DNA from: Trichosphaerium sp. ATCC 40318
Lineage: Eukaryota; Protista; Tubulinea
Reading direction: 5' to 3'
DNA: 64,000 nucleotides
Assembly: GCA_038496445.1 (NCBI GenBank)
Contig: JALMLS010000017.1
Span: 124,001 to 188,000, forward strand
Part shown: in pieces, positions 2,223 to 64,000 of the stretch
Position numbering within the stretch: the first letter of the stretch is position 1
Layout: the number at the start of each line of letters is the position of its first letter
The notes under the pieces: generated by a model
The model's input: only the letters and a program-made list of their open reading frames with translations
The model's database searches: none
Told to the model about the DNA's origin: nothing
Program-made: the position numbers and the translations under genes

Positions 2223-5200
2223 ATGGCGTCCAAAGACCGCGATCATTGGATCGCTATACAAAAAAGAGTAAGGATTGTTTTCAGACTGATGACCCGTTCA
2301 GTCGTTATTAAAACCACTTTAAATTGTATTTACGTTAAGAATTAGACGTTTACAGCATGGGTAAACGAGCAAATAAAATCACGAGACGTTCAAATATCGG
2401 ACCTATACGAGGACATTCACAATGGCGTCTATTTGATATTCCTGGCTGAGAGTGTCACTAGTGAGTTTTTGAACCAAAACAAAAAAATGGATCAGATCTT
2501 TATTTAACGCCATTAGAAACTGAGTTTAAGCGTCGGTACTCTAAAAACCCGCGAATGAGGTAAGAAAATAATATACACGTGAAAAAGGAGTCTCCTTTCT
2601 CACTCGTTGTTTGACAAAGAGTGCACAAGATGGAAAATGTTAGTATGGCGTTGTCTTTCCTCAAGCTAGACGGTGTTGTGTTCGTCGCAATTGGACCTGA
2701 AGGTACACATTACCTCGTCTACAGCAGTCACTGCACAGTGCTTAAAATGGCTCACTCGCGCGTAGATATCGTAGACAAGCATGAGAAATTGATATTAGGT
2801 CTAATATGGACTCTTATTGCTAAATATCAGGTATCTTCTGGTGTAGGATCAAAAGATGCTCTGATGGAGTGGATACAAAGTAAAATCCCACAAAAAAATG
2901 TAAAGAATTACACATCAAGGTACACAAAGGTTTTCTTGCATTAACTGATTTGGTAAAATAGTTGGCGTGATGGCACTGCTATATGTGATCTTGTTAATGC
3001 GCTTGAACCAGGAACCATAAAAGATTCAGAAATAAAACACGTGCGTCGAAGATTTTATCATGTGACACAAGTTTGTAATATTTTAAATTAGAATGCTCCA
3101 TTAAAAAATGCTGAACTTGGTATTAATGCTGCTGCATCTTTGGGTATACCAAAGATCTTACAACCAGAAGATATGATCGCAGATGACGCTGTACACCTTT
3201 TTTGTTCAAGCAAAGAACTTGACACTTATGATTATCCGTAGGACGAACTAAGCGTTGTCACTTACTTATCGTACTTTCCACAGTACAAACCTATAGATAT
3301 TGACGCGTCAAAATGCGTTGCGAGCGGTCCTGGATTATTGAATGCAGATGTTTCAAAGCCAAACGATTTCACTGTTACTGCTGTGGATAGGTATTATTCT
3401 CTTTGTTTAGCTTTGGTTACTAATCCAAAATAGCCAAGGGAATAAAGTAGACTGTTCTAGTTCTCCTTTCCATGTTAAAATAAGTGGACCTTCACCAGCC
3501 TCGCACAAGGTAGTACCTACCTCGGGTAAGGGTGACTTCAAAGTCTCTTGGGTACCTAAAAAGGCTGGAGTATACGAGGTACCCTTAAAGTTACTACGTA
3601 TTTCTAAATTGAGTAGCTTGATATATCGCTGAGTGATGGAAAACGCGTCGGCTCTAGTCCTTATTCTGTAGAAGCTGTAGGGAGGTAATTATAGTATTTA
3701 ACTTTAATTCATTTACCAATTTGTTTCAAGTGGTAATGCTTCACCTGGATCCCTACGTGTGAGACACTGGAAAACTTTTCGTGTTCACTACATACCTTTC
3801 AGTGATGGAATGTCATTTGGGGACTTTTGGAGTTCACTTAGCAATAGCCCTAATTTCAAGAATGTGCAATCAGTTCATTTTACTAAAGAGGTGATTACTT
3901 GGTTATCTACTTTATTGTGACTAAATCTATAAGGGTAAACGGATGCGTATAAATGATGACACAAATCTAAAAGCTGCATCCGAATCAGGGGGCATCCTTG
4001 AAGCTTCAGATACCGAAAAGGGTACACTGTAAATACTTCACAGCAAACTCATATTTGTGTAGATTTTGGAATATTTACAGAATCACTACCATCTGGCGAG
4101 CCACGTTATCACGTGATTTTTATGCATGGTCTCGAACCACATCGAAGCACATGGGTTTCTCCAGAGGTACTAACGCAATGAGACATCTAAATGATCAAAA
4201 TAACACTGCATAGGGCGTTTTCTGGTCTGGAAAATGGCTTGGTGCTGATTTGAAGAATAGTCATGTTCTGTCGTTCCGTTACAATGCTTCTGCCTATAGA
4301 ACGTTTTGGTCTCTTTTCTACCAACTGAAATTCGCAATGGTAGAGATACAAAGAATGAACCTAAAGAAGCCAATAGTATTTTGTGGTAAGTGCTTTTTCC
4401 GCAACCTAAAATCAAGTTTAACGTACTGTTAAGTTCATGGCCTTGGAGGAATTCTGCTGAAATGGCTCTTGTACAGTTACCCTAGATTACGTGCTCAAAC
4501 TAGAGGCAAGCCACTTCGGATTTAAAACATTGACTAACATTTGCAAAGGTGTTGTATTCTTTTCTTGTCCATGGAGACAAGTTCAATGGAGGAACTTTTA
4601 TAATATTTATGGTATTGAACTACCTAAATATTTTGGAATGCTAGCCAGATTTGTTAACAATAAGTACAATGGATTCGGCATTCCTTCGCTTTGTTTTGGT
4701 GCTCAATACCAATTAAAGGCACGTGTATTGTCAATGTTACCTTGTTTCTATCTAACTAGTACAGGGTTGTGACGTTGTGCCTCTTGAAGCTTCCGGTAAA
4801 GTTACCCCATGGGGCCTAGTACAATGGCACCCTGTTGCTAGAGATCACAGCACAATTGTGCGGCCAACTCGTGAAGATTTTCTTCCTTATAAACGCACTG
4901 TGCAATGGATCAAAGGGTTGTGTACGTACTTTTTTACATAAAGAAAATGATAACAAGCTAAAGTCACTTAGATGAACCTGGACGTATTAATCCATGGTAC
5001 TCTTGTAAAGGCAAGTATAGGTATTCTCATTGATGATCTAACACGTGGGTTATAGGATCTCCAAAAATCGATTTTGTGTTCGTACCTGGCTTGTGTCGTG
5101 ACGTAAACGGCGTATGGGGTATTAGAGGAAATCCAAGTAAAAGTTGGGCATTGGTACTAGAAGCATACACCAGTATTGATTCTGATTACCTTTTTAGTCG

Positions 5201-60228: not shown

Positions 60229-63200
60229 CTATATCTTCAATACGTCTTGTACATCTCTAGTGACTGAAACATTCTTGTATTTTTTTTTCAGACAATATAC
60301 CTTTGACATGTTTCCTATACTTGTTTAAAATCTCCTATAGAGTTCATATCAAAGCAAGGTAAAACAAGTACCACAAAAGACCAATATAGGCATTTTTATC
60401 CATCTCTTGTTTGATCTTATTCTTTTGATTAAGTCATGTGCTGCAAACTCATTTCCATCACCTTTACGATAACTATTTGTGATTATACGTAACCTACTGT
60501 TACAGAATCCTATAAACTTTTGAAGCCATGCCAAAACCTCTGTAGACGATGTCATAAGTAATACCTTAATATTAAAAAAATTAGTTTGTTGGTTTAACAA
60601 CCATGTGGGCACCTCTGTTTTCTTTGGTCGTTTTTTAAGCAGTCGCAAAATCTCTTTATTTTCAACGGACATATTATCATCGACCCACAATATAAGACAT
60701 CGTGCATCTCTGTACTTTAACTTGAACTCTCTGTGATTCATATTATTTGTGCACTTATAATAAACAAGATATCGTGGTAGTATCTAGTGGTAAAACATAA
60801 TAAATCAATTGATGAAAGAGAAAAACAAGTAAAGTGAGTACTTGGTTTTTAGAGAAAACTACTATCTCGTCATAGTCAGGCTTTTCATTTTTTGTACAAG
60901 GATAGCAATTTGAAGCACTCGTTGTTTTTTTAACAATGGCATAGTGTGAATCATATCCAGCCTTTACAAATTAGAAACAATAGAAAACAGATGATACCTT
61001 GCATCCTTTTCCATGAAGGCTATTTGAATCATTTGTGCTAGGCTTCTCAGTTGCTGGATATGGCTTTCCCATCATCACCCAGGAAATTAACATGCACGGA
61101 TTCTTTGTAGGACTACTTCCCCATTCGGCATAAACTCTTCCTGCAGTGTTGTTAAAGCAAACTCAAAAAAGAATTAGTTGCTAGTTACCATAGTCAGGGT
61201 ATTGTGTGAAGTAGATACCATTTCCTATAAGAGTTAAATAGTTAGAGCATTAACACTGTGTTGGGTTTTTTGCACCAAAGAATCCTGCATCTTTCTTGTT
61301 TTTAGTTTTGCTTGGTTCCTTAAAATTCGCTGAAGCGATTTGGAAACTGACTTCCTAAATTATGTTACACCATTACACATATACTTTGAGTTTTTGTACC
61401 TCTTTTGTACCATGAAATCCAGCAATTAGATTTATTGCTTCATTTCCAGAAACACGTAAAATGTACTTCTTTAAATGATTCAAAGTACGTTCTTGTGCTT
61501 CTTTTGTCTCTTTATCCACAACAGAATTGCTTTCTATGGAATCTATTGTCATTAAAGTTAAAACTACCACATGAACTAACTAACACACACGACTTACCTG
61601 AGGTTTTAGCCAAAATAACTTTGTTTAGGAGACTTTTGTGTTGTGCTCTAAAGTTTGCTTCTAGTTTTGGATTGTGGAAGAATACAATCTTCTCCACTTC
61701 AAAAAATGAGTCACTATGTGTACCCACAAACTTACAGGTCTAAAAATTACAGTGGTATATACCAGTTTTTTTATGGTATATACCACTTTTTTCAACAAAA
61801 TGGTATATGGACTGGTATATACCATTTTGAAATACCACTTTTTTTAGAAATTAAGTGAATAAAAAAGTGGTATATGGAAGTGGTATATACCACTTTTCAT
61901 TCACATAATGAGACCTTCTAAAAATGGTATATAAAGTGGTATATACCACTTTTTTATGGTATGTGGTATATACCACCTTTTTATTGGTATATACCACTTT
62001 TATGGTATGCTTCAAGAAGGTCATTAAGGAGCTTTTTGGTAATGGGTTTTCTTGTTGAACGATCATAGACGCCATACATTGAACGGTGCGTAGAGACTTT
62101 AGTATATCATAGAATCTAACCAAACCAAGCTCATTCGAACCGCAGGACCTGATTCCAGTACCAACATTAAGGAAACTATATTGCAGGTATTATACAGACG
62201 TTCGTGAGTACCAGACAAAGTTTTATTTTATTTTCGTTTGATATACATTAACCGACCTCCGTAGGCCTTAGTAATTGATGGATTCAGGTGGGACAACTTT
62301 CATTAGGTGCGCAGCATGTTTTTACAGTAGACACAGAAAGCTCATGGAGATGGACGAATTTTACAGACGCCCATAGTAATGTAACTGTAGTGGACATTGT
62401 CCAAAACTTGTAACTCACAAACTGTGTATTAAATAAAGTGTATTTTCTGGAATTGCAGGTGTACCATAAGTAGGCATAAAGTGGTATATAAGAGTGGTAT
62501 ATACCATGAAAAACTGGTATATAAAAGTGGTATATAACTGGTATATACCTAAAAAAAGTGGTATAAAAAAGTGGTATATTTTTTTTTTTCTGGTGAAAAA
62601 AAGTGGTATATTTTCTGTTTTTATACCTGTTTTTTTTGGTATATTGTTGGTATATTTGGTCAATATACCACTTTTTTTGGTATATTTCGGTCAAAATATA
62701 CCACTTTTTTTGGTATATACCATAAAAAACTGGTATAAAAAAGTGGTATAAAAGTGGTATATACCAAAAAAACTGGTATATTTTTTTAGACCTGTATAAA
62801 ACATATTGTAAGCTCTTAAGTACTCAGCTTGACATTCCTGTCCAGAATAAATTAGCTTAGCACTTTTTTTTTTTGAAGTGTACTTGTGTCGTTTCAGTGC
62901 TGACAAGAGAAGTCCATCTCAACCCTTGATACTTTTTTTTATCTTCCTTCCAAATGCCTTGTTTAAGAAATTCTTTTTCATATAAGCTGCTCCAAAAATA
63001 TTGACGCTTAGGCAGTACAGGAAAGCCTTCTTCCAGATGTGATAAAGTTACAACATGTCCTAGTATCTATGTCAAAATAACCTACGCATAGTTTACTTGC
63101 CTGTGCTCTTACATTTGTATGGAGAATCTGTTATCTCTATAAACTGTCCATTTTGAACTTTAACTGGACACAGTTTACGTAGTGTAGCTTTTAATCGCCT

Positions 63201-64000
63201 TGTATATGCATCAAGAGTTTTCTAAAAAATCCAATAAGTTTTGTTGTGGTAGTCAAAAAGCATACTGTCCATAGCCATGGCGCTACTCCTCTTATGACAA
63301 TGTTTATTATGTTATTATGGTATGACAACACAATGGTATTTTCATAAAAATCAGTCAATACAACCAAGTTTGAAAACCATTGAAACTCTTTGTTTCGGAA
63401 TTCTAGATTGCTTGTAAAAACAAAAAAATTGGTACTTTGACATACTTTGTAAGTGTTTCTGCAAATTGTTAAAAACACTTGTTGCAGGAGTGTATAATAA
63501 CCTTATCTTGTATGCCAAGAACTTTAACTTGTGACGCATTATCTCATATTTAGGAGGAAGTACCTTTAACAAAAGTAAACTCAGAATAACTTGGACTAAT
63601 TATTGTCATATGGGTTTTGTTTTTAAAGGTACCACTTTTTGAGAAGTCTTGGCTATTGTATCAACGACAGTTTTTGAAATATTGTTATCCATTGTGTGTA
63701 CATATGACAATAACTTCCAATTTGTTGATGACTTGTACAAACGAAATACTTGTGGCAAATCACCTTGTGCAGCTTGTGTTTGTTTAACTAATGTGATACT
63801 TTTCTTTTGTTGAGTCAACGGTGGAAAGTAAAACATATCAGCCTTAGGTAGTAGTGATATGATTAAATATCCTTCAGAACCATATATTGCCTAACAATAA
63901 AAGTCAACCTCTTGCTTCAAAACGTGTACAATAGTTTTACAAAAATTACAAGATGGATGTGCCTTGAGTACTACATTAAAGCAGCGACCGGATGAAAGGA
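60229..64000 (-). CDS. COR-like + PARP-type ADP-ribosyltransferase + receiver-like domain protein; 5' part outside the window; interrupted by a TIR element at 61735-62794
   Basis: ART: AEYLRAYNMFY[element]KFVG...VEKIVFFHNPKL, GFHGT, DAGFFG-NGIYFT, VMMGKPY, GYDSH, YDEIVVF..Q-ILPRYLVYY; C-terminal ILWVDDN...IITNSYR...PILVFC; upstream LLYTPATSVFNNL...W...INIVIRG...CP...C..GH (COR-like, weaker). Confidence 0.75.
61751..62008. repeat. Left arm array of (AAAAAG)TGGTATATACCA(CTTTTT) palindromic units
   Basis: Repeated TGGTATA/TATACCA motifs with A/T spacers. Confidence 0.92.
62461..62780. repeat. Right arm array of TGGTATA(TACCA) units
   Basis: Repeated AGTGGTATA / TATACCACTTTTTT motifs, outer part inverted relative to the left arm. 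Confidence 0.92.

Follow-up and report, generated by a model that had tools for sequence, protein, structure and literature searches.

We describe a mobile element in a 64,000-nucleotide stretch of the genome of Trichosphaerium sp. ATCC 40318 (contig JALMLS010000017.1, positions 124,001 to 188,000), hereafter the window. The element spans window positions 61735-62794 (1,060 bp), with TA on either side, and is a copy of a non-autonomous cut-and-paste (terminal-inverted-repeat) DNA transposon, probably of the type found in the CACTA/EnSpm-Mirage-Chapaev-Transib-Plavaka (CMCT) group. This group fits best because the element and its relatives combine CA...TG ends, 2-bp target-site duplications and subterminal repeat arrays. 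The window family shares its CAG...CTG ends with four sister families, each with a private subterminal motif, so that the window copy belongs to a genome-wide group defined by ends of the form CAG...CTG, by a 2-bp duplication without sequence specificity and by motif arrays private to each family.

Both boundaries were read directly from the sequence. On the left, ...aaactTA is followed by CAGGTCTAAAAATTACAGTGGTATATACC, and on the right, GGTATATTTTTTTAGACCTG is followed by TAtaaaac.... The two ends form a perfect 12-bp terminal inverted repeat, CAGGTCTAAAAA, and this exact 12-mer occurs in just two places in the window, the element's own termini. The original prediction had proposed that two low-complexity arrays in this region are the arms of one bounded element; our reading agrees, and the ends and the 2-bp duplication had been placed correctly. 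The element is organized as follows.

61733-61734, no strand assigned: left copy of the target-site duplication, TA, read from the sequence (a perfect 2-bp repeat at 18 of 19 family loci).
61735-61746, plus strand: left terminal inverted repeat, CAGGTCTAAAAA, from sequence reading and a word search of the window.
61747-61996, no strand assigned: left arm, with 17 TGGTATA half-sites in both orientations, including seven full TGGTATATACCA palindromes.
61997-62481, no strand assigned: unique core of 485 bp, free of the motif, in which no coding capacity was found.
62068-62169, no strand assigned: internal module of about 100 bp, with 62-75% identity to other CAG...CTG families.
62482-62782, no strand assigned: right arm, with 21 TGGTATA half-sites, mostly AAAAGTGGTATA direct repeats, including three full palindromes.
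62783-62794, minus strand: right terminal inverted repeat, which reads TTTTTAGACCTG (CAGGTCTAAAAA on the minus strand).
62795-62796, no strand assigned: right copy of the target-site duplication, TA, read from the sequence.

The arms owe their low complexity to a single short motif. The palindrome TGGTATATACCA occurs ten times in the window, every time within the element (seven times in the left arm and three in the right), compared with 0.00 expected from shuffled sequence. The underlying repeat unit is the half-site TGGTATA, usually in the form AAAAGTGGTATA, and the full palindromes are pairs of half-sites placed head-to-head. The element contains 38 half-sites, all of them at element positions 19-262 and 748-1046 (about 0.2 expected by chance) and none in the core, while the remaining 63 kb of the window hold 13. 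When compared in inverted orientation, the left and right arms are 68-71% alike because both share the TGGTATA motif. In this respect the element resembles Foldback (FB) transposons, which also have arms of short repeats that are alike in inverted orientation, and the earlier description of it as a foldback element holds insofar as the arms are built of repeats. It differs from them in that the true inverted repeat covers only 12 bp, the arms have a motif in common and are not mirror copies, a unique core takes up 485 of the 1,060 bp (46%), and the duplication is 2 bp long. The duplication made by Drosophila FB is 9 bp.

The element is non-autonomous, because it has no open reading frame (ORF) of note, only short ones, and yielded no protein match. 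Scanning the element for tRNAs and Rfam families produced no hit over threshold, the palindromes contributing nothing but hairpin noise. It had also been labeled a Pack element, which would mean that it had captured part of a gene. We found no source gene: no host source of the core turned up in approximately 300 kb of genome sequence examined, and some of the core consists of a module that also occurs in the sister transposon families. An introner-like origin was considered as well and rejected. Exact GT...AG removal of the element plus one duplication is impossible, as the three exact excisions begin and end with TA/TG, AC/GT and CA/TA, and use of the element's own splice sites (CAG/GT and TTTTTAG/) would leave 10 extra nt and shift the frame.

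We screened the assembly (70.3 Mb in 642 contigs) with the element and recovered at least 40 full-length copies at 97-98% identity. Because these copies lie in differing flanks, the element is not an artefact. Exact 14-mer ends occur 118 times in the genome, compared to 5 occurrences of a control word; at least 48 copies have paired ends, 22 of them being exactly 1,060 bp long, and end counts put the family at about 55-59 copies in total. Deletion derivatives of 459 and 805 bp are present, as are older or broken copies at 93-96% identity. Across 19 independent copies, mean divergence from the consensus is 0.96% and pairwise identity is 98.3%, with the core having diverged more (1.37%) than the arms (0.6%); the window copy carries 13 private substitutions. 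The family has thus undergone a recent burst, and the expectation of a young, multi-copy family was borne out by the genome search for its termini, which gave many copies about 1% from the consensus. The terminal repeat in combination with the motif had no match in metagenome or viral collections.

In four cases two copies are separated by less than 2 kb, compared to 0.06 such pairs expected, which fits the local reinsertion of a cut-and-paste element. This excess of close pairs suggests either local hopping or hot regions of insertion. Pairs 845-1,500 bp apart are found at C39:266794-269759, C58:84050-87667 and C602:7104-10174, and the flanks of the C39 pair were confirmed to be different. 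One close pair sits in an inverted duplication: at C354:21137-26894, a separate copy of the element is present in a host-gene paralog, at another position (equivalent to about window position 63266), and the whole unit has been doubled. Family copies also lie within long retrotransposon ORFs (reverse-transcriptase and integrase-like), seen in the flanks of loci L006, L008, L011, L014 and L003. The copy at L005 is nested in another CAG-type element, and nesting in other repeats is common.

What the family does to its targets was apparent from the 19 independent loci. A perfect 2-bp duplication is present at 18, and the remaining one is imperfect (TA/TT). Among the 18, TA occurs seven times, AT four times and TT twice, with TG, GT, AA, AG and CT once each; 14 of the 18 contain no G or C, compared to about 38% expected from base composition. 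The duplication is therefore 2 bp of variable sequence, with a preference for A/T and no fixed target. The TA duplication reported at the window copy is correct, but it is not a trait of the family, since the other 11 perfect duplications are other dinucleotides. Taken by itself, the TA at the window copy is misleading for classification, and the family-wide duplications correct it.

Empty sites were found for the family and for two sister families. In the window family, locus L005 reads tatTG-element-TGttt, and its paralogous empty counterpart, L034, reads tatCGttt; the host sequence is a copy of another transposon. A sister family of 927 bp with CAGGGCTGAAAC ends and the duplication AC is filled at L045 and empty at L044 and L047, and the same holds for a sister family of 1,033 bp with CAGTGGTAAAAT ends and the duplication TT. 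The filled and empty pairs of the two sister families lie in host sequences that are 99.8% identical. At the window locus, at least eight paralogs of the host gene match both flanks in colinear fashion, the gap between the two matches being longer by only 9-24 bp, and none of the eight has the extra kilobase. We take these paralogs as paralogous empty sites for the window locus.

These properties compare well with those published for the CMCT group. CMCT lineages have 5'-CA..TG-3' ends in common and make duplications of 2-5 bp (PMC12730594); within this range, PlavakaA duplications are 2 bp and PlavakaB duplications 2 or 3 bp (PMC12730594), and animal CACTA elements also make 2-bp duplications (PMC6004678). 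The window family has ends of this form (CAG...CTG) and, at 18 of 19 loci, a 2-bp duplication without fixed sequence, the same length as in Mirage, animal CACTA and Plavaka elements. It also has the subterminal arrays beside short terminal repeats that mark CACTA elements, in the form of 38 half-sites restricted to the arms. Arrays of subterminal repeats characterize CACTA, hAT and P elements. The likeness to the known members of the group (EnSpm/CACTA, Mirage, Chapaev, Transib, Plavaka and ESTA, along with Lanisha; Kojima 2025, PMC12730594; for animal CACTA MITEs (transposable elements of the miniature inverted-repeat type), PMC6004678) thus takes in the 5'-CA...TG-3' ends, the 2-bp duplication, a short terminal repeat followed by motif arrays that run in both orientations, direct and inverted, and the presence of non-autonomous derivatives at moderate copy number. 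From these traits we infer the superfamily, because no transposase-bearing master was found, and we put the chance that the mobilizing enzyme itself belongs to the CMCT group at slightly better than even.

Several observations weigh against this assignment. The ends are CAG...CTG, whereas typical CMC ends are CAC...GTG and others in the group are CATCA or TGT. No transposase-bearing element with the ends or the motif of the window family was found among the ends listed, 11 unpaired ones having been read and 18 further end matches falling outside the listing, and no transposase of the C(2)C / H(3-4)H kind is linked to the family, in contrast to the CMCT group. The Pfam models PF02992 (CACTA) and PF18759 (Plavaka) had no match in the genome, which is intron-rich; control genomes were equally silent, and because the controls gave no match either, these negatives are uninformative. 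Other enzymes are available in the genome, with exons of DDE_3 (Tc1/IS630-type) transposases at 7 loci and of DDE_Tnp_4 (Harbinger/ISL2EU-type) transposases at 10. Lastly, the window locus had no covering support in the public reads examined, which came from three small runs of one sample.

The unpaired ends were read individually, given that a transposase-bearing master with the same terminal repeat had been envisaged. Five of the 11 are chance words without motifs; the others comprise copies that are truncated, older or broken and a single diverged end fragment (on C103). Five further unpaired ends lie at contig starts. None of the family ends listed shares a contig with DDE_3 or DDE_Tnp_4 exons, except on C120, where they are 150 kb apart. 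A transposase-like ORF of 379 aa lies 8 kb from the C103 fragment, and we rejected it as a partner of the family because it belongs to a separate TTAA-flanked element of about 2 kb. This second element is found at L044:4703-6725, L045, L047 and L027:828-1967 (C596, C153, C501 and C103/C293). Its 379-aa protein has [D](2)H-like and NxxES-like motifs and no Pfam match. The element is present at no fewer than eight loci, some of them 99-100% identical, and has been a repeated target of CAG-type insertions.

If not a CMCT enzyme, the mobilizing transposase could come from the ISL2EU branch of the PIF/Harbinger-ISL2EU-Spy (PHIS) superfamily, making the window element a non-autonomous member of that branch. 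ISL2EU elements favor AT-rich targets and duplicate 2 bp there, usually AT (PMC4122938). The window family is like them in the 2-bp length of its duplication and in its target preference: its duplications are A/T only at 14 of 18 loci, including the four AT cases, and the 10 loci with DDE_Tnp_4 exons would offer a source of enzyme. However, the commonest duplication is TA and not AT (4 of 18), duplications containing G or C occur, the family ends listed are all off the DDE_Tnp_4 contigs, and no link to either a THAP-DDE transposase or a YqaJ gene was seen. Moreover, the combination of CA...TG ends and densely packed subterminal arrays is characteristic of CMCT/CACTA elements (PMC12730594). We therefore consider an ISL2EU affiliation unlikely.

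A second alternative is a cut-and-paste lineage that has yet to be described, marked by CAG...CTG ends, 2-bp duplications of no set sequence and arrays private to each family, and served by an enzyme outside the named superfamilies. The existence of several families with the same design, the lack of a Pfam CACTA or Plavaka signal, the failure to find a master and the CAG rather than CAC ends are what such a lineage would lead one to expect. Yet every structural trait of the family falls within the published CMCT range (PMC12730594), and this explanation, too, has a low probability.

According to the original prediction, the element belongs to the Tc1/mariner superfamily, and would then be a non-autonomous element moved by a TA-targeting, Tc1-like DDE transposase. 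This is understandable from the window copy, which has a TA duplication and CAG ends. TA also outnumbers every other duplication in the family (7 of 18), CAGT ends of Tc1-like form occur in sister families, and DDE_3 exons are present in the genome, so that the CAG(T)-type ends, the 2-bp duplication and the commonest target are all reminiscent of the non-autonomous Tc1/mariner elements known as Stowaway-like MITEs. But strict TA targeting is the defining trait of Tc1/mariner (PMC4122938), and it is contradicted across the 19 loci, where 11 of the 18 perfect duplications are not TA; the non-TA duplications TG, AC and TT are confirmed by empty sites. Besides not being restricted to TA, the window element, at 1,060 bp, is larger than typical Stowaway MITEs and has arms of about 260-310 bp made of motif arrays, and the family ends listed are absent from DDE_3 contigs, save for C120. 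A Tc1/mariner enzyme is accordingly very unlikely; that label is wrong for the family, and little is gained by calling it foldback or Pack.

An assembly error or low-complexity artefact at the window locus might account for the only matching public contig (X1, 667 bp) having family-majority bases rather than the private ones of the window copy, and for several copies lying at contig ends, but it is hardly credible given exact ends and a 2-bp duplication as at 18 other loci, 13 private substitutions and flanks colinear with the paralogs. This contig, the one from the public reads that covers the core, has nine listed differences from the window copy, all of them family-majority bases. It is a collapsed family sequence, and as such is uninformative on the window locus, an empty allele, expression or splicing.

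Returning to the CMCT-type reading, we propose the following mode of movement. As the element encodes nothing, a transposase made elsewhere would move it in trans, and this enzyme would presumably recognize the 12-bp ends. The TGGTATA and TGGTATATACCA arrays in both arms may be bound by the enzyme itself or by an accessory protein, aiding recognition. The enzyme would then excise the element and join it to the target with a 2-nt stagger, the repair of which would produce the 2-bp duplication. In En/Spm, subterminal repeats beside short terminal repeats bind a protein encoded by the element. It is reasonable to suppose, as the original prediction did, that the palindrome arrays of the window family are binding sites of the mobilizing protein.

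The window family and other CAG...CTG families, with differing ends and motifs, have in common a module in the core, about 70-100 bp long. We compared it at window positions 62068-62169 and at L045:7655-7745, L030:1560-1680, L028:465-555 and 3645-3730, and L009:510-580, where it has 62-75% identity and invariant words (TACTAA and GGTTCGAA-like). The module matches neither a tRNA nor any known RNA family, and substitutions in it do not follow a codon-like pattern. It might represent a cis element under conservation, or else the relic of a common master. It is tempting to speculate that the window family and its sisters are the non-autonomous cloud of a deeply divergent, unnamed DDE lineage of amoeboid protists, which would be a new branch next to Mirage/Plavaka/Transib-RAG or else a Tc1-like enzyme that has lost TA specificity, and that the shared module is a cis element needed for mobilization; we regard this picture as possible but rather unlikely.

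Two further features of the 1,033-bp sister family were observed. At L047:5222-7285, two 1,033-bp CAGTRGTAAAAT elements lie head to tail, their junction reading ...CCACTG followed by TAGTAAAAT; the second copy is without its CAG, there is no duplication between the two, and the tandem may be the product of aberrant or end-to-end transposition. In the copy at L045:8624-9656 (family C), the left arm contains short telomere-like AACCCTAA repeats.

The flanks of the window element are part of a gene family whose paralogs number at least 30, with DNA identities of 65-71%. The assembly contains no allelic haplotig of the window locus, the best other match to the flanks being 71%. Two conserved exons of the host gene frame the insertion.

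61598-61730, minus strand: host-gene exon just downstream of the insertion, reading FVGTHSDSFFEVEKIV...; conserved, with paralog matches of 65-79% DNA identity that reach the last query base.
62884-63059, minus strand: upstream host-gene exon, conserved, in a frame other than that of the 37-codon ORF beside the insertion; query base 85 (62881, a position in the GTA donor) is the start of eight paralog alignments, and for four alignments the last base is 266.

The original prediction placed the element inside an exon on the grounds that its removal rejoins a minus-strand ORF. The frame is indeed open on both sides of the element, but the rejoining argument is weak, as the open frame upstream of the junction has just 37 codons and is out of frame with the conserved exon at 62884-63059. 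A peptide search with these 37 codons returned only the self-match. Two phase-compatible GT...AG intron models can be drawn. In the first, a 46-nt intron (62883-62838, acceptor CAG) places the element within coding sequence, some 43 nt from the start of the next exon; in the second, a 91-nt intron ending in AAG (61732-61731) puts it 2 nt before the acceptor. We favor the 46-nt model because its size matches two neighboring introns (55 and 30 nt, placed by frame) and because it has the better acceptor. It is quite likely, in line with this model, that the insertion interrupts a coding exon at the N-terminal edge of a PARP-like domain. The peptide across the junction also resembles the EY...F start of mono-ADP-ribosyltransferase (mono-ART) PARP domains. 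An 11-base homopolymer run at 62864-62874, between the conserved upstream exon and the insertion, would change the frame if it were coding; it may be intronic, or its length may be an error in the assembly.

The host gene itself had been called an ADP-ribosyltransferase. We can agree with this to the extent that the PARP-like H-Y-E motifs GFHGT, GIYFT and YDEIVVF were recognized by eye, and the gene appears PARP-like from these motifs only. Nothing seen in it pointed to a toxin or an injected effector. Searches with single exons did not add to the assignment: six host exons gave no match in Pfam, two gave none in the Protein Data Bank (PDB) with phmmer, and a 44-aa exon searched against 1.84 billion representative proteins retrieved two repeat-protein artefacts only.

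As a single insertion, the window element is of little weight, being one young, non-autonomous DNA transposon that disrupts or lies beside an exon in a large gene family. The family is new, and the type of element is already known. Nevertheless, with its exact boundaries, its empty sites and its locally clustered copies, the family lends itself well to a search for the enzyme that serves the many CAG-ended families of this genome, and its dense array of 12-bp palindromes could be used as it stands to probe for the domain with which this enzyme, or a helper protein, binds DNA.

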